From positions 1 to 28,012 of the forward strand of contig CAXIUT010000296.1 in assembly GCA_964035545.1 (NCBI GenBank): 28,012 nucleotides of DNA. The letters are read 5' to 3'. The translations under genes were made by a program, and so were the position numbers. Source of the stretch: Bugula neritina. Its lineage: Eukaryota; Animalia; Bryozoa. Shown piece after piece: positions 2,811 to 22,406 of the stretch. The stretch's first letter is position 1, and every line of letters begins with the position of its first letter. The notes below the pieces were generated by a model. That model did no database searches and was not told where the DNA came from. It saw only the letters and a list, made by a program, of their open reading frames with translations.

Positions 2811-3757
2811 ATGAGACTCGTTACTAGATGTTGTTTTTCCTTCTCTAAAATAGGATTCATTGGTTTAGGAAATATGGGATTTCCAATGGCCATCAACCTT
2901 GCTAATAAAGGTCATTAAGTCTTTGGATACGATATCGATCAGTCAAAAGAAGCTGAAGCAGCTAAACATAAAATAACCTTCAGAAAATAAATTAAACAAG
3001 TAGCTAGAGATGCTAACATCTTCGTGACTATGCTTCCAACTTCAGAACACTCAAAAAAAGTATGCTAATCAGATGGAGGTACTTCTTTTATGAGTCAGGT
3101 TTGTTCAAAAATGCAGATCCTAATTCTACAATTATTGATAGTAGCACAATATCACCAACAGCAGCTATGGCTTTAAGCGAATCTGCTATTAAGCACAAAA
3201 TGACTTATATTGATGCTCCAGTATCTGGTGGAACGACTGGAGCTGCAGCTGGAACTTTAACTTTCATGATAGGAGCATAAACTAAGTAACTTTTCGAGGC
3301 AATTAAACCTTATATTCAATGTATGGGTAAAAATATATTCAACTGTGAAAAGGTAGGAGCTGGACAAATAGCCAAATTATGCAACAACATGTCTCTTGCT
3401 ATCTAAATGATCGGTATTTCTGAATCTCTTGCCTTGGGAAAATCTCTAGGCATGGATGAAAAAATATTAAGTAGCATAATGAACGCTGCTTCAAGCAAAT
3501 GCTGGAGTATTTAAAATTATAATCCTATTCCTGGAGTTCTTAAGAACCTGCCTGCTTCTAATAACTATGAAGGAGGATTTGCTTGCTAACTCATGCTCAA
3601 AGATTTGAGATTAGCAGTTGATGCATCGAAAGAAGCCAAAAGTACAATTAATCTTGGAAATAATGCTAAATAAATATACTAGAAGCTATCTAGCACAGGT
3701 TTTGCTCGCAAAGATTTCAGTGTTATTTATGACTTGCTCCAGAAGAAGGACATTTGA
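2811..3757 (+). CDS. HIBADH: 3-hydroxyisobutyrate dehydrogenase, mitochondrial
   Basis: IGFIGLGNMGFPMA, DAPVSGG..GA.AGTLTFMIG, AKLCNN, CWS..YNPIPG, GGF...LMLKDL; one 20-nt intron at 3079-3098. Confidence 0.95.
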
Positions 3758-4331: not shown

Positions 4332-4403
4332 GGGCGATTGGTCTAGTGGTATGATTCCTGTTTAGGGTACAGGAGGTCCCGGGTTCAATTCCCGGATCGC
4401 CCC
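4332..4403 (+). tRNA. tRNA-Pro(AGG)
   Basis: Acceptor stem GGGCGAT/ATCGCCC, anticodon arm CCTGT-TTAGGGT-ACAGG, T loop TTCAATT, followed by a T5 Pol III terminator. Confidence 0.97.
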
Positions 4404-4444: not shown

Positions 4445-5604
4445 TCACTTATACTGACGACTAAAAGAGATTATATCCTTTTCCAGAACTTTAATACTAG
4501 ACAATAGCCTTGCATTCTTTTGATAAAAATGTCTGGAATTATGAATAAACGATTTGAAATCTTTGATAAAATCAAGCTAAGAGAAATATTTATCTTTTTT
4601 GAAGTTATCGATCATAGTTGAGACATCAATTGGAGTAAAATCTAAAAACAAAGGTGAGTGAATTACATTATAGTTGCATTTTTTTAGTTCTGGCTCTGTT
4701 TTTTTGTATACTTTATTTAGAAATGATCCGACTAATTCATATTTTTTCCTCTATTTACTACTACAATACTTCTAATGTGAAGTCCTTCTCCATCCATTTT
4801 CCAGTAACCCGTCTAACCTTTCAGGATTTATCTTTGAATATTCTATTCTACCTGGATAATATCTATTAAATGTTGGTTTTACAGTTTGAGCGTATTTATT
4901 AGGACCTAAAAATTCAGGTTTAATAACATCATGAATAATTTTTGTTTATCCCTTTATTTTATCTTTAGAACAAAAATAATTAATATCTGGACTGATTAAA
5001 CATTGCATTTTGATTAATTATTTGTTCCATTTTTATTTTGGTATCCACTTTTTATTAGAAATATACTCAATTTAACTGAATCCATTTGCTTGATATACAT
5101 TTTTTAGTTACTTATCTACAATGGCAACTAATAATGTTATTTAATGTAATTGCAAATATCCTATATAATATAAAAATTACTTTTAAGCGTACTAACTAAT
5201 AAATTAGATCTAAAACTATCACTATATGACTTCAACATTGATAACCATTTTATCTAACAGTAACAATTAGGTTTTTACTGAAAACATATACCTCCAATAA
5301 GTTTGTTTTTATAAAAATAAAGCAAATTTTTACATTTATTTGAAAAAATGTCCTAACTTACTACTTAAGGTTGTCCATGAGGAATGTTATGCTAAATTAT
5401 ATCCATGAATTTTAGAATATTATGGGTTTATAGATCTCCTCGAATAGCCTCAGTCAAGTAAAAACTATTATTTTTATCAAAGTTAAGAGTTCTTCCTTAG
5501 AATTAAATTCTACTACTTTAGCAATGATAATTATTTTCTTATTTTTCTTAGATTTTAACTTCGCAGTCTTCTTAATCTTTTATTTCTATTATTTCTGGAA
5601 TCAT
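4445..5604 (-). CDS. Divergent GCN5-like protein (HAT domain + bromodomain), 379 aa
   Basis: LIGGICF...CEIKW, ANGFS...W...MQCLISPDINY, INPERLDGLLENGW and PIDVSTM...KYFSELDFIKDF...NSRHFY are colinear with GCN5; 20-nt intron at 5161-5180. Confidence 0.8.
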
Positions 5605-5761: not shown

Positions 5762-7344
5762 ATGTAAGGAAAAACATCAAAACTTAGAGATTTCGATGTT
5801 ATTTGTAAACTCGGATAAGGAGCATTTGGACAGGTCTTCAAAGTCAAAAGAAAAGCAGATGGCAAATAATATGCCTGCAAGAAAGTAATTCTAACATTAC
5901 AAAGGTTAAAATCGGTGCTATGAAATAAAAATAAAGATAAAACGCTCTCAACTAAATTCGTATTCTCGCCTCCTACAATTAATAATACATCATTGGCTAT
6001 AAATAAGCTTTCTACGATGAACCTTCATCAGCACTATGCGTAATCATGGAGTTCGCCTCGGGTGGCGACGTTCTCAAACGCAATCAAACTCATCAAAAAA
6101 ATAGAACTAGATACAAATAATAATAAATTTGGAAAGCTTTAGTTCACATGTGCAAAGGATTAAAATCTTTGCATTAAAGAAAAATTCTTCATAGAGATTT
6201 AAAATGTGCCAATATTTTTATAACTGGAGATAATGTGTACAAACTAGGTGATTTAAACGTCTCAAAAGTGTTGAAAAAAGATATGGCCAACACACAAACT
6301 GGTACACCATACTATGCAAGTCCATAAGTTTGGAAAGATAAACCATATGGTTTGAAAAGTGACATGTGGTCATTGGGTTGTGTCCTCTATTAAATGGCAG
6401 CTTTGAAACCTCCATTTGTAGCTGCTGATCTTCAAAGTTTGTACAGAAAGGTTTGTGCAGGAATCTTTTAAAGAATTCCTGTTATGTACTCCAATGAATT
6501 GGCAAATGTTATCAACTCACTTTTAAAAGTTGATCCCAGCAAAAGACCAGATACTGACTAGCTGTTTGCAAGTGCTACAGTCAAAAAACACTTTAAAGGA
6601 GATTTATAATAAGGTAATTAGGAAGATGATTTTGATGAGTTACTTAAAACAATTAAGTTTAATCCAAAAGATTTAAAAGGACTTAAAAACTTTTTACCTA
6701 AAGCTAATTATGAAGAAGATATAAATTAGAAATAAAAGTTAAAAATAGAAGATATGAAAGGTGGCATTCAAAGCTGCAAAAATGTAAGAAAAGAGCCAAG
6801 TATAAAGTAAGGAATAAAGAACTCATTAGAAGGTAGTTAAAGAAAATTAGCATAGTTTATGTAAAAAAAAAGAATGCTTGAATAAAAGTAAAGACAAAGG
6901 CAACTAAAAATAGTTATGGAACAGAAAGGAGGAGAAATGACAAAAAACAGATAAAGAGTTCTATCAGCTTGTGGTATTCGCCATCCTCAAAATCTATGTA
7001 AATCTGCATTAATTATAGACTAGTCTCCTAATCCTAAAATAGCAATGATAAGTAAAAATTAGACTCCAACAAAACCAGATCCATACAAGAATAGTCAAGC
7101 TAAAAAAGAAGAAAGCAGAGGATCCAATGCTAAACTTCCTCCTCGTCCACAAGGCGGTCAAAGTCTTAACTACAAACTTCCTCCAAAACCATCAATGGGT
7201 CATCATCAATAGTACAATTCGAAACCCGAAGCCAAACAGTAGACGAAACCTCCTAGCCAATCAAGCAAGAACAGGATCTCTTCGGCTCGTTCTAATAGAT
7301 CTAGCAGCATGCAAAGAGTAATATATCCTTCATGGTGGGGGTGA
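5762..7344 (+). CDS. NIMA-related (NEK) Ser/Thr kinase, 520 aa
   Basis: LGEGAFG, ENALNEIRILAS, HRDLK, KLGDLNVSK, TQTGTPYYASPEVW, KSDMWSLGC; C-terminal YPSWWG; 20-nt intron at 5885-5904. Confidence 0.95.
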
Positions 7345-10207: not shown

Positions 10208-11883
10208 TCAAAGATGATTATGATTATGATTATGATGACCGAAATGATTGTTATCTTCATGATGTACAGTCTGTTCAACCTTCGACTAGTTCATCTTTGT
10301 TTTCATCCTCTGTCTCAACCTGAAGTTCTATAGTCTACGAATGCATTTGCATTGTCCATCTTTACCATGACTGTGATTATGATCACGGCTATATATATGT
10401 CGATTAGTTGGTGTGTTTCCATGAGGATTAGCTTGATTGTTACGAGGATGATGAACTGTTATATTATGGTTGTTTTGAGAATTATGAGGAGATTTATTAA
10501 GTTTCTATGGAGTTTGGAAATAAATTTGATCTTTTATTGAACTCTTTTTTTTGTTGCCTTCATCTATCTTTGACAGCTTTTTTCTAGCATGACTTATATT
10601 TTTAGACTATGAAAAAGTTCTAGTTTTGTTGGTTGTTGGTAATTTCGGATTAGAGCCAAAAAGGTCTTGAATACCCATTGAAGAAATTTCCATTTGTTTT
10701 TCGTAAAGAGAAGGAATAATTTGCACTAAAATACTATTTTAAAAGAGTCCACTAATAACTTCTCCACCAGTTAGATAGATTTGTCCCTTTCCATTTTGAG
10801 CACCAGATTTCCAATCACCCTTATAAAAGGAACTATCAGTCCAAAACATCTCACCATAACCTTCTCTTTTATCGTTAACAAAATTTCCTTTATAAAAGTT
10901 ACCACTTGGAAAATACAATTCACCATAACCTTCCTTTAGTCCTTATGAATAACTACCAGAATATTTAGTTTATCCAGAAGACCATTTTCCTTTTCCATGT
11001 CTGAGTCCATTTTTAAAACTACCTTCATAAGTAGCTTATCCTTGTTTCCATGCGTAAGTTCCAAATCCATCAAATCTGTTATTCTGATACTCTCCTTTAA
11101 AAGAATCTCCATTCGAAAAAGATTACTATCCCTGACCATGCTTCAATGAATTTACTAACATCCCTTGATAGGTAGATATATTTGTTTTAAGAGTACCTCT
11201 TCCATGCATGATAGCTAGTTTCCAGTGCCCAAGATAGACTGTTCCATTTTTTTATACATAAAGACCTTTATCATTTCTAAGTCCATTTGAAAAATGTCCC
11301 TTATATCCCCATTTATTATAGACCACTTCCTCTCCTAAATTAGATTTCAAATCATTAACAAAAGATCCCTTATACCATCCAACTCCAGCCTGTAAATAAA
11401 ATCCATTGCCCTCTCTTTTATTCGCCTGCATCATTCCTTCATAAATATTTCCATTTTTGAAGATAACAATCGAACGACCTGTACATTGACTATCAATAAA
11501 TTAGCCAACATATATTTTATGAGAACTAAGTCTAACTATCTTCAACTTATCTTTATTTTCTTGCATTTATCCAACAAACTACTTATTTAATGGACGATAA
11601 CTATCTAGATATATGAGTACATAGCAAAGAAGTTGTCAAGATTTTGAGGACCATTCTACCAACTTTATTGAAATAGCTATGGATATGCTTTATCAAGGTT
11701 GATAGATATTTGTCTTTCTAGCTAATTAATATCTTTATCTGGAAGTTTGAATTGTCCCTTTGTAACTCTAGACTTAATTGTTAGATGAGTTGATTGATTT
11801 TATTCCAGTTCTGGTTTGAAAACAACAGGAAAGGCAGGGAAGTCAGTTTCTTATAGCTCTTAAAAATCATTGCTGGTCTCCAT
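10208..11883 (-). CDS. MORN-repeat protein
   Basis: Many YxGx(W/F)xxxxxxGxG repeats between ~10780 and 11520; His/Asn-rich tail; at least one 20-nt intron near 11600. Confidence 0.85.
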
Positions 11884-11944
11884 AAATATATTTATTAATG
11901 TTTTATTAATCAAGTTGATTATAAAGTAATGAAACTATTATCAA

Positions 11945-12565
11945 TCAATTGCATTCTGTTTTATCTTTCTTCGAATCGAATATCAAATAATCTTTAGTCA
12001 GTTATTCATTGGTTTCAAGTTCAATATCTTTGAAAGCTGAAGTCTGGATCTCCAATTTCGTTGCATAAACCTATTTTATTCTAACTGATTTTTTATACAA
12101 TATATCTCTAATATTGATGACAAGCATATAAATTCCCATGCCTAGAATTAAACCTTAGAAATATAGCAAAAGAAAAGCTATATCTGCTGCTAAAGTAGAA
12201 TTGACAGTATGAAGGATAGCTACAAAGCAAAAGATAATTAATAAGATGGTGAACAATAGTTTTCCACATTTAACTGTTGAATTTAACGGAGAATATGTAT
12301 ATGTAGCTTCCAAGTCGATTCCTATAATTTCATGGCAAGTCTGGCATTTGAACTTAGCATCTTCCTATTTGAGTTGTTGCTCTTGGAACTGACTCATGAA
12401 GCACATTTGATGGCAGAATAAGTAACATTTACACAATGATATACATTTTTCATGGGTAAGGTTTAGATCACAGGTTTCACATTTTTGACCTAAACGCATC
12501 TACCACTTTTCAGGATCGAAAGCTATGGTTGGTCGAGTGCAGGAGAAATCAAGATAAGAACCCAT
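11945..12565 (-). CDS. RING-CH (MARCH-type) membrane E3 ligase-like protein, 206 aa
   Basis: CETC...LCKC...HQMC...CQTC (C4HC3) followed by two hydrophobic helices. Confidence 0.8.
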
Positions 12566-13039: not shown

Positions 13040-14066
13040 AATCTATCCAAACCAGCCTTCCGACTCCTTTTCTGTTTACTCGCAGAAAATACATTCTTTA
13101 TTTCCTTCGTACGCCAGTCCACCATCTACAATAACTGAGAAGAATGCGGTTCTACTCTAGGAAGAGGAGATAGCTCGTGTTTTATATCGACACAACTATC
13201 GCCCAAGAAATTAAGTGTCTACTTCTGTTTTACAATAGTACTCAAATCTCCTATCTTTTAGTTATTGTCAATTTGTCCTACTTCATTGCCCGGCACCTAG
13301 TTATTATCAACTATGGGTTATTTTATTTTTTAATAATATTTTTTTTGAAGACTGGGACTACTTCTTTGATTACTAATTTTCTAATTTTTTTATTTAGGAC
13401 TGTAGGCATGATAGTATCTTCCTGGATGTTGACTAGATTTGATGACTTCTTCAGTATTGGATCTAATTTTGACATCAGAATATCTATTATTTTTCCTAGC
13501 CAGATCAATAATCTTCTTAGGAGTAGGCTATTAAACAAACTACTGATATCTATATTGTTGTTTTTAGGTTGATAGTCTTTTATCGGCTGATGATTGTTTA
13601 TGTCTTTTGACCTAATTTCTTAATTAGTGAAGGTCAAGTAAATACGATGGTCCAATTGTATTCTTCTTAAGATTGACTGATTTAGATATAGCTTTCTGAG
13701 ATCCTTCTTTTTAATTGGTTTTGACTCGTTGTTTATTAGGATGATTTACTGGCGTTGGTTTCCGACTGAGGAGAGGATGTTATAACGGTAAGGATGACTT
13801 CTTTTTGGGTGATGTTTTTATATGGTCCAACTTTTCTTTCAGAGAATCGATGCAATCAATCAGCAAACGTTGGTCTGATGGTACTGTTTCGATTATTGCT
13901 TTTAGTTTAGATGTGATTGATTGGTGGGGAGGAGTATGTACCTCGGTTAATTCTAAATTAAAAGGGGAGTACTTTTTTATGAGCGGATGACTCTGTTTCG
14001 TTTGATGGAGTTATAGTTAAAAGTATGAAGTCTTTTGGCTGTGAATGGATTCTGTCTATTTTCCAT
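13040..14066 (-). CDS. Hypothetical low-complexity protein (3' end approximate)
   Basis: ATG at 14066, coding-like minus-strand composition, candidate intron near 13953-13972; exon structure not fully resolved. Confidence 0.45.
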
Positions 14067-14177
14067 GCTTATATTATCTCCTCAAAATCATACAAAACTA
14101 TCAGATTAGAGTGATTTTTAATCAAAGAATGTTAATGTTGAAAAGGCTGAAGTGATATTTATTCTTTGATAATAATA

Positions 14178-14921
14178 ATGAAGAAGAAGTAAAAAAAGCC
14201 TCAAAAGTAGGTGTACATGCAACGAATCAAATGCAATTGCATGGCACAAAAACACTAACTTATCAATAATTGTCTCAACTGTGGCAAAGTAGTCTGTGCT
14301 CAGTAAGGCGAAGGAAATTGTCTTTATTGTGGAAAACTAGTCACCAGACCATAAGGTCTCTTCCTCTAAGACACAGCAGCCATATTTCCATCTCTAACAC
14401 CAGAACAGCAATAAGCAGTCGTACAAGAACGATCAAAAGCAATTCAGCATAAAAATATTTTGGTTTAGAGAGATAAATCAACTTCAAATCAAAATATATT
14501 TGACTAACAAATGGACTACTATGAAATATCATAAAACAAATGGCTTGATGAGTCAGATCGACAACATGCGATTGATAAAATTTTGAGTAAAGGCGATTTA
14601 GTGGAAACTGAACAATTCAAAAATAATGCTAAATATGATCCGATGACTGGATAGTTTATTAGATAAGAATTTTCATTTGATGAAGAAGCCTTCAAAAAAT
14701 AAGGACAAAGCTATCTATAGAAAATATAAAAATAAAAGAAGATTTCTAAATAGCAAAAAGCTAAAGAGAGTAAACATAACTGGGATGAAAGATTGCTAAG
14801 AAGTGAAAAGCTAAGATAGCTTTGTGAAGATTTAGTTGGAGATTCTAGTGAACCAGTGAATAAGAAGGTATAAAAATAGACTAAAATACTTGGAGTTACA
14901 GAGTTGATTGTAGATTAGTGA
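14178..14921 (+). CDS. zf-C2HC5 protein (TRIP4/ASC-1/Rqt4-like), 247 aa
   Basis: CNCMAQKHELINNCLNCGKVVCAQEGEGNCLYCG plus IFDEQMDYY...KWL. Confidence 0.88.
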
Positions 14922-14949
14922 TTGTAGGATATATATAATTTTATAATAA

Positions 14950-16637
14950 ATGCTAAGTGCGACTGCTTAAGCTTATTTTGAGAGTGAATTTTAGCAAGAT
15001 CTAAAAGTAGTGGGATAAGATCTATTAAAAAAATACGATCCTGTGATCAAAGCATATCGAGATGTGATAATACCTTTTTAAAGAAATAGAATCAATTAGC
15101 ATCAGAGCATCATTTTTTAAAATTCTAATTTATAACAAAATAAATTGGAATTACTTGGTAAAGTATAGCAAGTAAGATCATAAAATTAGAAACTAGAAAG
15201 TGCACTTGAACATCAAATGCTTAAAATAAGTGAGTACTAACATAAAATATAATAAATGAATCAACTCAATACTGACAATCTCAGTATTATTGAATCACTT
15301 AGACTAAGAAACTAAGATTATAAATAAGCGATAGATCACAAAAACTCATCTATCATTCAATTATAAAAAGTAATTTTATATTTATCAAGGATAAACAAGT
15401 GCTGCTTTAAAAATATCAATAAAAAGATAAATAGTACAATTTAGTATTAGCTAATTGCATGAGAGATAAAAATCTTTTGGCAGAAAAATTAAATCAAATC
15501 AATTAAATGGAAATCACACTTCACTAAAAATAAAAATAACTCAAAGCTTAACAGTTTTATATCAAAAAACAATGGTAAGAATTGGATTAGAAAAAAAAGA
15601 CACCACAATAATAAATTAAAAAAGATAGTAAAGTAACTAAAAGTTAGTTCTTTCCTTCAGCAAATCGACAATCAGTCGATAATAACTCATACAATTAAGT
15701 ATAAAAACCTAAATAAAAAAACACAAATAACTAAATTCTACGAAATCCACTCCGTAAACTAGTAAAACATCATCAGAGTTAAATCTATGATCTCTCATTT
15801 AACTACAATGGCAATCTTCTAGCTAGTTGCGGAGGAGATAGATTCATAAGAGTATATGATATTCTTGGCATGAGAACTGCCTCCAATATTAACTCTAACT
15901 CTCCAGAAAGTGTGTTCATTAGTGTTGCTCTTGACTACAGTGGAGATCGACTCCTCTCAGGTTCAACAGATAAAACTTTAGGAATCTATCACAGTCAAAC
16001 AGGAAAACATTTACACTCGTTTTTAGGACATGGCAGTAAAGTCAACTCAGTATGTTGGACCAGCTCCAGGTAAAGATGCGCTAGTGGTTCTGATGATAAA
16101 CAAATGAAGGTATGGGATATTGAGAAAGCTTCTAATGTGTTTTCAGTTGGATGTCAAAAAGGAGTTAAAGTAGTTAGATCAAATAATGTATAACCACTGG
16201 TCTATACTGGTCATTCTGATGGTAGTGTTCGAGTCTACTCCACTTCCCAAGGAAACTCTCCAGTATCCCAAGTCAAAGGACTGATCGACTACTCCATCAC
16301 TTCTCTAACATTACTATCAAATCGACATCAAGTCCTAGCAACTAGTTTAGATGGTTCAATAATTCATCTTTTAGATTTTAAAATGAACAAATCAGTCTGT
16401 AAATACTAACATCGTGATTTTTTCAATTCTTCAGCCCATGGGACGATATCTCCCTCTTAAGGTTTAATTTTAGCAGGTAACTGTGAAGGTTCTATATATT
16501 ACTGGGATCGATTCAAAGGAGATATGGTCAAGAGAGTATCAGGGCATGATTCGGCATCAACATCTATTAGCTATCACTTCATGAGTAGTTTGCTGGCCAG
16601 TGGAGATAAAGAAGGAAGTTTGATTTTATGGCAGTGA
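14950..16637 (+). CDS. ATG16: ATG16-like coiled-coil + WD40 protein
   Basis: N-terminal coiled coil, then WD repeats colinear with ATG16L (LLASCGGDRFIRVYD, GHGSKV...SGSDDKQMKVWD, TGHSDGSVR, AGNCEGSIYYWD, terminal LILWQ); N-terminal introns not fully mapped. Confidence 0.75.
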
Positions 16638-16672: not shown

Positions 16673-17674
16673 ATGAAAAACATTCTTCTTGTTGTCTTGA
16701 TAGTAGTCATCAAAACTGATTTTCCAGCTTCTTTTACAATAGTCAGAAATATTCTGCAACCTCTTGGTCTTGATGGCTTTATGAAAAAAACAGGATGTTG
16801 CTAAACAGATAGTAAAGGAAATACAATCAGTTATACCCATATTTCTTTAGATGGCTTCAAATCAACTTCAACATCTACAACCATTCAAAACGGCATATCT
16901 CCACTCAGTTGCTGGATAAATGCATTTAGCGATATCTCTTCATCAAAACCTTAAAAAGGAGGTAACAGCGTATCTTCTGTACAAGAATATCTCATAAATA
17001 ATTATCATCAACATGGAGTCAAATTACTGATGAATGCCTTTGCTGATTAGGCACCAATAAGCGACTTAAAAACAGATGCAAAAGCTGTTGCTTTGAATAT
17101 CGCTAATATAATTAAATCTACCCAATTGGATGGAGTCAGTATATAATTTGAAGATTATCATGCTGTAGCAGATGGAACTGCCTCAAATTGGCTACAACTA
17201 CTACTCTCTACATTAAAAACATAAATTCCATCTTAAACAATTATTCTAATTATCCCAGTAACCATAGTTAGCAAAGTACTTCTTTTGCAACAAACAAATG
17301 TAAATGCATATGTAGATATATTTGTTCTAAAGTATTATGGATTTAATAGATAAGATTACACCAACTATAATTCTCTTTTCTAGAAGAGCACGATAATTCC
17401 TGATACATCTTTTGGATAACTGCTGAAAAGTAAAACTGTTGGAATCGATCTATGTAGAACTTTGATTTCCAAACCTAGTCGATCAAGTAGAGATAGCTTT
17501 ATTGATCAATAAACTTTGAATCAAGCCTTTGTAAATGCAAGAAATACCTTTGGATGGTTTGGTGGTTATGCTAATCTTGATTTTTAGGGAGATTCTGCTC
17601 TTGGATTTCAGAGGCAAGTTATGCGAGGATTAAGAGATTAATGTATGCTAAAAGGAGACTGTTTCTGTCAGTGA
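16673..17674 (+). CDS. Secreted GH18 chitinase-like protein (333 aa) with a degenerate catalytic motif
   Basis: Signal peptide MKNILLVVLIVVI; YHQHGVKLLMNAF; LDGVSIEFED at the DxxDxDxE position; WFGG near the C-terminus. Confidence 0.75.
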
Positions 17675-17727
17675 TTATTACTATGAATAATATTTTATAT
17701 TTCTTTACTAACACAAATAAACTATGA
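17643..17727 (+). repeat. ~80-bp direct repeat, copy 1 (others at ~20497-20577 and ~24337-24408)
   Basis: GTATGC..AAAGGAGACTGTTT(CTGTCAGTGATT)ATTACTAT...TTTACTAACAC.AATAAAC occurs three times; copy 1 is the GH18 stop codon plus 3' flank. Confidence 0.9.
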
Positions 17728-18570
17728 TTATAATAAACTGTCTTGAAAAATTATTTTTTCAAAAATAAAATAATATTGATTATTAATAATATGTCTAAGT
17801 CTTTCTAACCTTTTAAAAATAATCAGCTTTTCAATGTTTTAGTTATATGTTCTTTTTTATAATTTTTGACAATTATTTATTAGTATTCTTATTTTAATTC
17901 TTTAAGATTATCATCTTCTTTCTTGCCACGATAATCATCATTTTTGAACAACTTGATTGTTCACACTTCTTTAAACTTATATTGTATTAAAATTCATTTA
18001 ATGATTTTGTTTATTCTTTGATATTTAAATAAATATGCTAATCAGTAAATCTTATTTTCTTAATATCAATGTTTTATCACTTTTTCGACTATTTTTCGGC
18101 TCAGTTCATTCTAACTAACTCAACAAGACAATTATGCTTTGATAATATCGAAAAATTGATTTTTATTTTTTTATTAACACTTTTGAAACTTACAGGTCAA
18201 CTTGTATTCAGTCATAAATCATCCTTTCCCTGAGCTATGAACTTCTCCTGCTTTTCTCTAGTTTACTATTGCAATCCGGTATTATTTAATCACCTTATTA
18301 GCGATCATGCATGTTTGATGAGCCACCTGAAGAGATTCTATGATTAAAGGAAAATTCAATTTTTAAAGGAAGAACAAAGGTTAATTAGAGTTTTGGCTGA
18401 TTAATATACTTAGTGACTTATCAGGTAAAGAAGTAGCTTTCAAAAGGACTTCATCTCTTATAAATATTATTATAGAGAACAGAAATAGCATGAGAATCCA
18501 TAAACAAGAGTGAGTCAGTGGTTATAACTACATCTTTTTTATGGTAAGATCATCTTTCATTCTGAACTTA

Positions 18571-20331
18571 ATGTCAACCATCAAGCTAGCTATTCTTGTG
18601 CTCCTGTTGATTACTCTATCGATGGGCGGAATGTAGTATGATTTCTAGTCAGTGTGGTAAAGTGAATACTATCTAGAGTATAATTCAAGTTAAAAAGAAA
18701 CCAACCGTAACTCATTGATAAGTTAGAAGTATCTTTCTGGTAATCTAAGCATCAAAGTAATTTATTATTGAAAGAAAGTAAGGGTATTTTATTTATTTAT
18801 TTTAGCGTAAATAAATGATTTACAAAAAGGCGTATTTTATCTATTTATTCAGAGTATTAAATTCTTTAGAAATAGGAGTATTCTTTACATTAACCAAGAG
18901 TATTAAATCTTTTAAAAATAGGTGTATTTTTGCGACTTATTTAGGGTATAAATTTGTCAACTTAAGATGTAGTCTATCTATTAACTTTAGTGTACTAGAT
19001 AATTAAATGGAAGGTGTAATATTTACATTTATCTAAGCGTAGTCAATCATTATATTCTAGGAGTATTTTTCTATCGATTAAAGTGTATTAAATTATCGAG
19101 TAGCAGACGTACTATCTAGTATATTTTAGTGTATATTATTTTATTATCTCTAGTGGTACTTTTATATCTATATAGCGTATTAATTATGAGATTTAGTGGT
19201 ATTATTTATTTTGACATAGGGTGCCAATATTTAAGCTTAGATGTTTTCTTATAATCGATCTTAGCGTATAATGATAATTTAATATTAGAAGTTCTCTTTT
19301 GCCTATTGCAGGGTATTTAATACTATGACATAGTCGTACTTTTAAAATGATCAAAGAGTATCAAAATAAATCAATATTAGACGTGCTTTTATTTTAATGT
19401 TAGAGTATCAAACTATTAAGAAAAGTTGTAGTCAGTTTCTTTATTTAGTGTATTTTCTATCCAATAAAGATGTATCATTCTTTATATCTCAGTGTGGTAC
19501 TAAATGATAATATGGTAGATGTAATTTTGCTATTGATTTTAGGGTATCAAAAACTCAATTTAGGTGTACTGTCCTTTATATCTCAGTGCCGTATCAAATC
19601 GTTTAACTCTAGCTGTATAGTTGCTATTGATTTTAGAGTAATAAATAAATCAATACTAGGAGTTATTTTTCATTTACATAAGGGTATAAACTATTTTTAA
19701 AAAGAAGTAGTTATTTGTTTATATTAGTGTATTAATTAAAGATACTTTAGGCGTACTTTTATAATCATTGAAGTGTAATTAAATGTTTTACTTAGCGGTA
19801 ATGTTTATTTAACTAAGGGTACTTAATTTTTAAACCTAGAAGTTATTTTTGAATTAATTAAGAGTATAGAAATTTTCAATAAAAGGCGTACTTATTTAAT
19901 TATACGTAGGGTATTTAATTGTTTTAATAAAGCCGTAATATTTCTATTTATGTAGTGTATTGAATTTTTTATTCCTAGATGTTATCTTTTCTTTTTATTT
20001 AGCGTATAAATCATAAAATTAAGAAGTAACTTTATACTAATTAAAGTGTTTCAAGTATTTTAACTTAGACGTACTTTCCTAGCTATCTAAAGGGTACTTA
20101 GTTGTTTATCTAAGGAGTAACTTTTCATTAACATTAGTGTAAAAATTATTTAACTTTTAGTGGTACTTTTAAAATAATTGAAGCGTATCAAATAAATTAG
20201 TTGTAGTCGTACTCTTTAAGTGATTCAAGAGTATTAGATTATTAATTCTAGGAGTATTTTTTATACTAATCTAAGTGTACTAAAATAACTGATCTTTAGG
20301 CAGTGTATCATTGGTCGTGAAAAAGAACTGA
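18571..20331 (+). CDS. Micro-exon gene A: secreted Cys-rich prepro-peptide (67 aa) with ~73 tiny introns
   Basis: Removing every ~20-23-nt GT..AG segment gives MSTIKLAILVLLLITLSMGGIVKTNQHQIRRRSDCRYLLDQVNIYCDGCPRECSESAYQYGLLRCSN-TGA; exons alternate 1 nt and 2 nt over 18784-20299. Confidence 0.85.
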
Positions 20332-20577
20332 GTGTATTATCTCCAAAACAAAGACCTTAACGATCAATAGAGAGTAATACTACAATTATGAAGAGTTCGT
20401 TTGATTCTCACATAATTCTAACCTTACCTTATCATCTGAATGATTGTTTGTTTAAATATCATTTATTCATAGAGATTATTATAGCTAAAAAAATCAGTAT
20501 GCAGAAAGGAGACTGTTTCTGTCAGTGATTATTACTATTTTTACTATTTTATATTATTTACTAACACGAATAAACGA

Positions 20578-21207
20578 TCAGTAAATACTATGAGGACTGT
20601 GCATGATTTTCTTGAACTGTTCGTAAGTGATGCGAGATCCTTCTTCCTCATCGACCTTTTCGAACACATAGTCTAGATCTGACTGCTACCACTGCTCTCC
20701 TAAACTCCTTAACAAAACCTACAGATCTTTGCGACTAAGATATCCCTTATTGTCTCTGTCTAGTTTCCTGAACATCTTCTTTATTTCCCTTTAGCCTTCC
20801 AGTTCAGTTGGCTCTCCTGAAATAATCTTCATAAAAGCTGGAAAGTTAACTCCGCCAAGACAGTCCTCGTCATACTAAGCAATGATGCTGTAGATGGTTT
20901 CCTTAGTAGCGTGAAATCCCTGGTGGAAAAGTGCTACCTTCAAGTCGTTCGGAGTCAGAAGACCACTCTGATTAGAGTCGTAGGCATCAAAGGCTTCCTT
21001 AATAGAGACTATGTCTTCTTCGCTGAACTGAGAAGTGATGTAGAGAGTAGGATTGAACTAGGCTTGGTGCTTGATGGCTGAATACCCTGGACTGTGAGAT
21101 GACCTTTTGTGTCTACTTGTATCTTTGAGCCTACTGGTATCTTTGTGTCGAATCTAGTCTTCGAAGAGGTGTCTGATTGGTGTGCTTCTTTTTTACTTTG
21201 TAGTCAT
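20578..21207 (-). CDS. Centrin/calmodulin-like EF-hand protein, copy A (209 aa)
   Basis: IKEAFDAYDSNQSGLLTPNDL, IIAEYDEDCLGGVNFPAF, MFRKLDRDNKGYLSRKDL, VDEEEGSRITYEQF; intronless 630-nt ORF. Confidence 0.9.
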
Positions 21208-21271
21208 CGTTATCTGTAACTCTACTTATTGATTTTGAATATTACAGTTTGTTATTATCAAAAATAAATCA

Positions 21272-21408
21272 TCAAAAACTTACTTTTCTAAAGGACATTT
21301 CCTCAGATAAAATCAGTGTCTGAACCGGTTATTTCTAAAATATCCAAAAAGAAGCCTCCTCTGAACAGACTTGACTAGATTCTTCTCCATTGTAGTTGTT
21401 TTATTCAA
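21272..21408 (-). pseudogene. Orphan 3' fragment of the HSF-domain gene
   Basis: Near-identical to 25103-25239, the last ~45 codons of the HSF gene; no upstream part is present. Confidence 0.8.
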
Positions 21409-22406
21409 AATTTTAAACAAGAAAAAATATTAAATTATTTTATTATGAATAGATGCAGTTTAAGAGAAAATTATTTCCTTTTATTGCTCAAAATCTTTTA
21501 GAATCATTTTGTTTCTCTACTAAATCGTTTATATCAATAAACTTTCAAACACAATATAACTATAACAATATATTCTAAATACAAAATAATCTAAAACATC
21601 AGAATTTTTGCTATACCCAAGTCTTCTAACTATTCTAAACATCATCAACTTGTCAAAGGTTTAGTTGTTTACTCTGTTTTTATCTCTATTTTTATTTTAT
21701 TTACTGTCCTTTATTGTTATTTGACTATTCTTTATAACTATTTTTATTTTTTCAAAGCCTGATAATCATTATTTTTGGATAATTTGATTGTTTTAAGTAC
21801 TTTAAGCTAATATTTAATTCGAAATCATTAATTTTTTATTTATTCTTTGACATTTACTAAAAATACAAACGTCAATCAGTAAATCTTATTTTCTTTATGA
21901 GAAAAATAAATCACTTTTTCGACTATTTTTCAGCTCAGTCCATTCTAACTAACAAAACAAGGCACTTGTACTTTTAAAAACTATCCTACAATAGATTTTG
22001 ATATTTTTATTAACACTTTTGAAACTTACAGGTCAACTTGTATTCAGTCATAAATCATCCTTTCCCTGAGCTATGAACTTCTCCTGCTTTTCTCTAGTTT
22101 ACTATTGCAATCCGGTATTATTTAATCACCTTATTAATGATCATGCATGTTTGATGATTCAGCTGAAGAGGTTCTCTTATTAAAGGAAAATTCAATTTTT
22201 GAAAGAAGAACAAAGGTTAATTAGAGTTTTGGCTGATTAGTGTACTTAATGACTTATCAGGTAAAGAAGTAGCTTTCAAAAGGACTTCATCTCTTATAAA
22301 TATTATTATAGAGAACAGAAATAGCATGAGAATCCATAAACAAGAGTGAGTCAGTGGTTATAACTACATCTTTTTTATGGTAAGATCATCTTTCATTCTG
22401 AACTTA

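Follow-up and report, generated by a model that had tools for sequence, protein, structure and literature searches.

A 1-nt exon lying between two GT-AG introns is spliced correctly in Arabidopsis (PMC4674806) and in the Fusarium CYP621A gene (PMC12940212), which indicates that exon sequence is dispensable for recognition. In Schistosoma MEGs, exons of 3-81 bp are individually symmetric, and the introns measure up to 5 kb (PMC10526429). Ciliates with tiny introns, among them Stentor (15 nt), Paramecium and the peritrichs, have narrow intron length distributions, minimal GTA..AG signals and intron-defined splicing (PMC9505925, PMC13685798). Intron densities of at most 2.87 per kb of coding sequence (CDS) have been reported in ciliates (PMC13685798). 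Searches of the full-text literature on single-nucleotide exons, runs of micro-exons, tiny introns and the genomes of ciliates, peritrichs included, found no published micro-exon array of the kind described below and only three kinds of partial precedent. This agrees with an earlier note on this DNA, according to which no such architecture had been described. To our knowledge, no spliceosome has been described that copes with whole arrays of 1-nt exons. Recursive splicing, with its zero-length exons, and the stwintrons of fungi excise a single long or nested intron in successive steps, none of which leaves any sequence in the product. Conotoxins combine a conserved signal region with a hypervariable mature region on an invariant Cys scaffold, and their coding sequence changes faster than the neighbouring non-coding DNA.

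The locus analysed here lies in a window of 28,012 nt, the whole stretch of DNA that was examined. It comprises two paralogous genes on the forward strand, gene A (18571-20331) and gene B (22407-24173), each with 72 predicted introns. The Arabidopsis and Fusarium cases are isolated single 1-nt exons between introns of normal size, whereas genes A and B show an unbroken run of alternating 1- and 2-nt exons between introns of 20-23 nt, the splicing of which is predicted. Like the Schistosoma MEGs, they encode putative small secreted proteins, open with an ordinary signal-peptide exon ahead of a series of micro-exons, and evolve fast, and their frame-neutral units could allow variant products. 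Unlike in the MEGs, the exons measure 1 or 2 nt and are symmetric only as a pair, and they are separated by introns of 20-23 nt; the product has no sequence homology to Schistosoma MEGs in the protein set and Pfam. In their narrow intron length range and minimal GTA..AG signals, the two genes resemble the tiny-intron ciliates. Yet gene A, with 72 introns in 0.225 kb, has a density of ~320 per kb of CDS, compared with 2.87 or less in the reported ciliates. As in recursive splicing and stwintrons, abutting donors and acceptors impose serial steps, but here each step would leave 1-2 coding bases behind. The plan of a conserved signal, a hypervariable mature region and a Cys scaffold is shared with conotoxins, without homology, and unlike in conotoxins the variable region consists of codon-sized cassettes embedded in introns.

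Both ends of the window consist of perfect telomeric repeats with a 6-nt unit, identified by Tandem Repeats Finder: CCCCAA on the left (1-80, 13.3 copies) and GGGGTT on the right (27926-28012, 14.5 copies). With C4A2/G4T2 repeats at both ends, the window represents an entire 28-kb ciliate macronuclear minichromosome. Its GC content is ~29%, and it forms one contig (C305) in an assembly of 321 contigs and 216 Mb. The multi-megabase contigs of this assembly look like a different organism, so the ciliate is a cobiont in the sequenced sample. A tRNA-Pro (anticodon AGG) at 4332-4403 was the sole Rfam or ARAGORN match on the chromosome. The conserved gene for 3-hydroxyisobutyrate dehydrogenase (2811-3400) contains TAA and TAG in frame, and one of its in-frame stop-type codons aligns to Asp in PDB homologues. 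This alignment would fit a reading of UAR as Glu better than as Gln, judging from the two positions examined.

We resolved gene A, a gene for a putative small secreted cysteine-rich peptide, with a dynamic-programming parse. This resulted in 72 GT..AG introns of 20 nt (n = 11), 21 nt (n = 31), 22 nt (n = 25) and 23 nt (n = 5), and in 73 exons, of which 32 have 1 nt, 33 have 2 nt, three have 4 nt and one each has 5, 7 and 9 nt, with a first exon of 62 nt and a last exon of 32 nt. The CDS comprises 225 nt including the TGA. A putative promoter and 5' UTR (18480-18570, forward strand) is identical in pairwise alignment to 22316-22406 upstream of gene B. Exon 1 (18571-18632) translates from the ATG into a hydrophobic signal peptide (20 codons plus 2 nt) and is identical in gene B. 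Introns 1-6 (20-22 nt; 18633-18783) separate exons of 4, 1, 9, 2, 7 and 5 nt that would encode the propeptide up to an RRR site; their parse is the one that leaves the ATG frame open to the stop. The micro-exon array proper (18784-20299) follows with 66 introns and encodes the predicted Cys-rich mature peptide. Its delineation draws on the parse and on the intron classes, autocorrelation and null test given below. The 32-nt terminal exon (20300-20331) ends in a TGA that has a homologous TGA in gene B. From 18806 to 20276, the alternation of 1- and 2-nt exons is strict, interrupted only by two 4-nt exons (TGTG and TGCC).

The parse reproduced the joined exon string and the six upstream introns proposed in the earlier note, and its hand counts of about 32 one-nt and 33 two-nt exons turned out to be exact. 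The intron number needed a small correction, from ~73 to 72, with the array itself upheld. The 204 coding nt given there fall short of the 225 nt found here. The spacers of 16-19 nt that it described are the stretch between GT and AG, and the whole introns measure 20-23 nt.

A regular-expression scan of the window returned exactly two long GT..AG chains, both on the forward strand (18757-20302 and 22600-24168). The longest chain of introns with 1-2-nt spacers had 36 members in the window, compared with at most four in 400 Markov-1 simulations of 28 kb each, which excludes chance as an explanation for the array. The chain of micro-exons claimed for gene A is thus real by both the parse and the simulations. 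Outside the two arrays, the longest such chain in the window was two introns on either strand. Two studies provide independent public runs (X2 and X3) whose contigs also contain the unspliced array, which is therefore no assembly artefact. The only other site in the window with two AT-rich GTA..AG candidates at most 15 nt apart was at 4832-4882 on the reverse strand, where the spacer is 11 nt.

Besides the window, strict two-intron patterns matched in clusters on four small contigs of the assembly (C147, C209, C274 and C285), with isolated single matches on two others (C39 and C78). The real patterns gave 15-28 matches and reversed-pattern controls 6-8. On C147, pairs of ~20-22-nt GTA..AG introns with 1- and 2-nt exons cluster at 61501-61657 (reverse strand). 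Clustered intron pairs were likewise present on C209 at 13943-15077 (reverse strand), on C274 in two inverted copies at 10644-12132 (reverse) and 14726-16069 (forward), and on C285 at 5816-6184 (forward). The two intron classes of C285 differ from those of the window, and a near-exact repeat occurs there at an offset of 302 nt. When a first, looser pattern was applied to the whole assembly, its matches were drowned out by simple repeats in the large contigs, which come from a different organism.

We next considered whether the spacers have the properties of U2-type spliceosomal introns of the tiny ciliate class. GT..AG termini are found in all 144 introns of genes A and B, and all 288 splice dinucleotides are intact in both paralogues. 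The donor reads GTA in 128 of the 144, and the acceptors are TAG (n = 81), AAG (n = 52) and CAG (n = 11). GAG is absent, which has a probability of ~6e-5 given the interior G frequency. An A, a candidate branch-point adenosine, is present at position -7 in 69-70% of the introns of both classes. As an ordinary reference, we used a 20-nt GTA..CAG intron in phase 1 at 3079-3098 (forward strand) in the dehydrogenase gene. Its excision merges two frames into a continuous NAD_binding_2 domain, with positions 1-23 of the Pfam profile upstream of the intron and positions 80-137 directly downstream, and PDB 3-hydroxyisobutyrate dehydrogenases match the gene at an E-value of 3e-10. In size (20-23 nt) and termini, the array introns agree with this single homology-validated ordinary intron. 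The earlier note had likened them to two ordinary introns; the one at 3079-3098 is validated by domain continuity, and the other, at 5885-5904, gave no reading-frame validation. Crude counts of GTA..AG yielded no signal above control for the length spectrum of ordinary introns.

The commonest intron length in the array, 21 nt, is a multiple of three and almost none of these introns contains an in-frame TGA, so that intron retention would escape nonsense surveillance. Among the 2-nt exons of the two arrays (18784-20299 and 22625-24141) taken together, ten read GT and thereby make tandem donors of the form GTGTA, and none reads AG. Several array introns have an internal AG 5-6 nt ahead of the acceptor used. 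A strict length window would need to ignore such alternative sites.

Genes A and B lie in a tandem duplication of 3.83 kb on the forward strand, in which the first copy (17930-21408) aligned to 21761-25239 in a self-BLAST search with 88% identity over 3520 nt. Each duplicated unit carries gene A or gene B together with one neighbour gene on the reverse strand. The copies of this neighbour (~20367-21765 and 24252-25143) are 97% identical, and the piece tested had no Pfam match. Beside the duplicated units lies a dispersed short repeat of ~65-93 nt that is 86-89% identical (17643-17735, 20497-20587 and 24355-24418). Gene B shares exon 1 and the first five introns with gene A, continues in an array at 22625-24141 and ends with a terminal exon at 24142-24173. 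Two consecutive TAA codons stand in its reading frame; TAA has a sense meaning in this ciliate. At 23338-23362 (forward strand), gene B has a tandem 5' splice site, GTGGTA, of which either choice is in frame (CDS of 225 or 228 nt). The choice that yields a TGTG exon (GTA donor at 23342) matches gene A, and the two peptides then align without gaps from the first Cys on.

The similarity between the paralogues varies along their length. Identity is complete (100%) over the 90 nt that precede the ATG and reaches 98.9% in exon 1 with the first five introns (18571-18749 and 22407-22586). It is 90% in the wider 5' flank and 82.5% in the arrays. This pattern suggests that the signal and promoter region is homogenised or strongly constrained.

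Evidence that the joined exons encode a peptide came from their composition and from the comparison of A and B. Exon positions, which were set solely by the GT/AG parse, have a GC content of 44%, compared with 16% in the intron interiors (P ~1e-10) and 38% in a known exon. The exon for the signal peptide is identical in both paralogues, and from it the joined exons read on in frame as far as the homologous TGA. The two peptides have 5/5 Cys, G-C-P and QYGL.RCSVSL in common and differ at 21 of the 43 aligned residues; Cys conservation alone has a P of ~0.03. Exon bases have diverged by 36%, as against 20% in intron interiors (Fisher P = 0.0007) and 10% in the 5' intergenic flank, and aligned splice-site columns are 98% identical. 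The similarity is patchy at the level of single introns (39-100%). These rates suggest that the splice sites are under purifying selection and that the coding bases evolve faster than neutral DNA. Exon divergence in excess of that of introns and flank would mark a secreted peptide that varies strongly around a fixed Cys scaffold. With a dN/dS of ~0.85 for A versus B, there is little sign of classic purifying selection on the protein, and the reading of fast coding change draws on the contrast with non-coding rates, not on dN/dS.

Intact splice sites, a conserved frame and stop, the Cys framework, islands of GC at the exons and the lack of GAG acceptors all argue for a spliced coding gene. The view that gene A is functional, with predicted introns after the first and third bases of nearly every codon, thus receives strong support from comparative sequence. 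Among the public runs searched for the locus, matches were DNA-like only and no RNA run contained any part of it; reads of the matching runs placed on the locus also gave only genomic (DNA-like) contigs. A 30-nt probe spanning joined exons had no match in metagenome contigs. The 74-aa product had no relative in a set of 5.8 billion proteins, in Pfam or, through back-translation, in metagenome contigs. Since ciliate transcriptomes are sparse in those collections, the blank product searches say little.

We consider it highly probable that A and B are functional paralogous genes in which tiny spliceosomal introns split the mature-peptide region after bases 1 and 3 of almost every codon. Each would encode a prepropeptide of ~74 aa, in which a signal peptide and the RRR processing site precede a mature peptide of ~42 aa with five Cys, and the message would exist only once all 72 introns are removed. 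Outside the Cys framework, the encoded peptide would evolve very fast. Against this reading count the blank RNA, probe and product searches, the dN/dS of ~0.85, a variant in run X3 that abolishes one donor of gene B, the 21-nt introns whose retention would go unnoticed, and the lack of a described spliceosome that copes with arrays of 1-nt exons. The spliceosome would read purely across the intron, relying on a 5' GUA, a 3' HAG and an A that stands ~7 nt ahead of the 3' end, and would accept only introns of ~20-23 nt. Under such a limit, each donor would be confined to its own acceptor and could not reach the next-but-one at ~45 nt, and exons of 1-2 nt would need no information. As adjacent introns are too close for joint engagement, their removal would be serial. 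Pure intron definition and, probably, ordered splicing had been proposed in the earlier note; both stand here as inferences.

The array is at the same time a degenerate repeat of 46 nt, with a unit that combines a T-rich phase-0 intron and the 1 nt behind it with an A-rich phase-1 intron and the 2 nt that follow. The phase-0 introns contain 56% T and have the consensus GTAnTTTT, and the consensus of the A-rich phase-1 introns is GTATTAAA. The autocorrelation has maxima at 46, 92 and 138 nt (0.41; baseline 0.32). Together, the periodicity and the two intron classes identify the array as a degenerate tandem repeat of two introns plus one codon. Tandem Repeats Finder did not detect it, as the repeat is too degenerate, and no compensation of intron lengths was found within the unit.

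Several observations bear on how this repeat changes. In array B, a local duplication of two units (92 nt; 22621-22824, forward strand) was detected by self-BLAST (22621-22734 versus 22715-22824, 79%), and yields consecutive GGT codons. In one X3 contig, four codons are replaced by one, a net loss of 9 coding nt, with every GT..AG and the 1/2 rhythm retained; this swap is tentative, as it comes from one short contig placed at 80% similarity. The comparison thus indicates that units duplicate and delete together with their own codon. Of the 26 variants listed for the runs, mostly from X3, 23 lie in intron interiors, two in exons and one abolishes a donor. Both exonic variants (23826 and 24051) are synonymous third-position changes. 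The donor loss, a G>A at 23271 in gene B, occurs in a contig with a depth of ~40, and in that population the copy that carries it could be a further paralogue or have become a pseudogene. The sequence supports an origin of the array through tandem duplication of the 46-nt unit, two introns and one codon at a time. Unequal exchange between introns of the same class would still gain or lose whole codons and leave the frame intact.

It is possible, if rather doubtful, that the array is a dedicated, frame-safe generator of diversity in one ciliate lineage, in which codon cassettes are duplicated, deleted, shuffled and possibly skipped, giving rapidly diversifying peptides on a Cys framework. The intron classes would then be a splicing scaffold, perhaps removed one class after the other in two passes, and would also provide homology tracts for unequal exchange.

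A related alternative also takes the introns as real and makes them a built-in diversifier, where the array would not be spliced into a single product and where skipping of units, or unequal recombination of same-class introns in the polyploid macronucleus, creates frame-safe peptide variants. Every unit of 1 nt, intron and 2 nt is frame-neutral, and because each codon is flanked by phase-0 introns, skipping or recombination of units would be safe for the frame. Unit-wise duplication and deletion variants exist, the similarity of A and B is patchy from intron to intron, and exon bases are hypervariable. Skipping, on the other hand, would require introns of 45 nt, against which the narrow size of 20-23 nt speaks. 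That A and B have kept the same Cys spacing points to one defined product. Several array-internal joints in X3 contigs fit this alternative, but they come from short contigs placed at 80% similarity and may belong to other paralogues. We regard this explanation as unlikely.

The array could also be a non-coding 46-nt satellite, made of TAG-N-GTA and TAG-NN-GTA motifs with a role at the DNA or RNA level and N as an unconstrained spacer. Its periodicity and class consensus sequences, the N positions being the fastest-evolving, a dN/dS near 1 and the lack of a transcript or protein homologue in the collections searched would all suit such a satellite. Unconstrained sites on a chromosome with 72% AT should, however, be AT-rich, whereas the exon sites have 44% GC, and the N positions diverge faster than the intergenic flank. 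Nor would a satellite account for two copies in frame with a signal-peptide ORF, with a shared stop and all Cys codons kept, or for termini that match validated introns of the genome and avoid GAG. These points make the satellite explanation highly improbable.

Barely credible is a small-RNA factory, in which 72 excised intron RNAs of 20-23 nt, the size of Argonaute/Piwi guides, would be the product and the peptide secondary or absent: the introns do have small-RNA length, form two sequence classes and are better conserved in their interiors than the exons, but ordinary introns are equally sized, so the size is not special, splicing constraint within a 20-nt intron explains the conservation, no excess RNA structure was found and the coding signals are left unexplained. 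Pairing of T-rich with A-rich neighbouring introns as a guide to processing was rejected separately (mean z of 0.0 and -0.7 versus shuffles), with adjacent-intron duplexes no better than non-adjacent ones.

If A and B are functional genes split by tiny introns and the joined mRNA exists, they would have by far the highest known intron density (~320 per kb of CDS) and the smallest serial exons. The spliceosome of this ciliate would then work with essentially no chosen exonic contacts and with neighbouring sites only 1-2 nt apart. Splicing would have to be serial, in an order that partly spliced intermediates could reveal. The copying of [intron, 1 nt, intron, 2 nt] units in tandem would represent a mode by which introns and codons are gained jointly. 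Gene finders and spliced aligners are blind to micro-exon genes, so that annotations probably lack the secreted-peptide genes of this group of ciliates. If the ciliate is a peritrich, one may speculate that some apparent frameshifts in peritrichs are unrecognised micro-exons.
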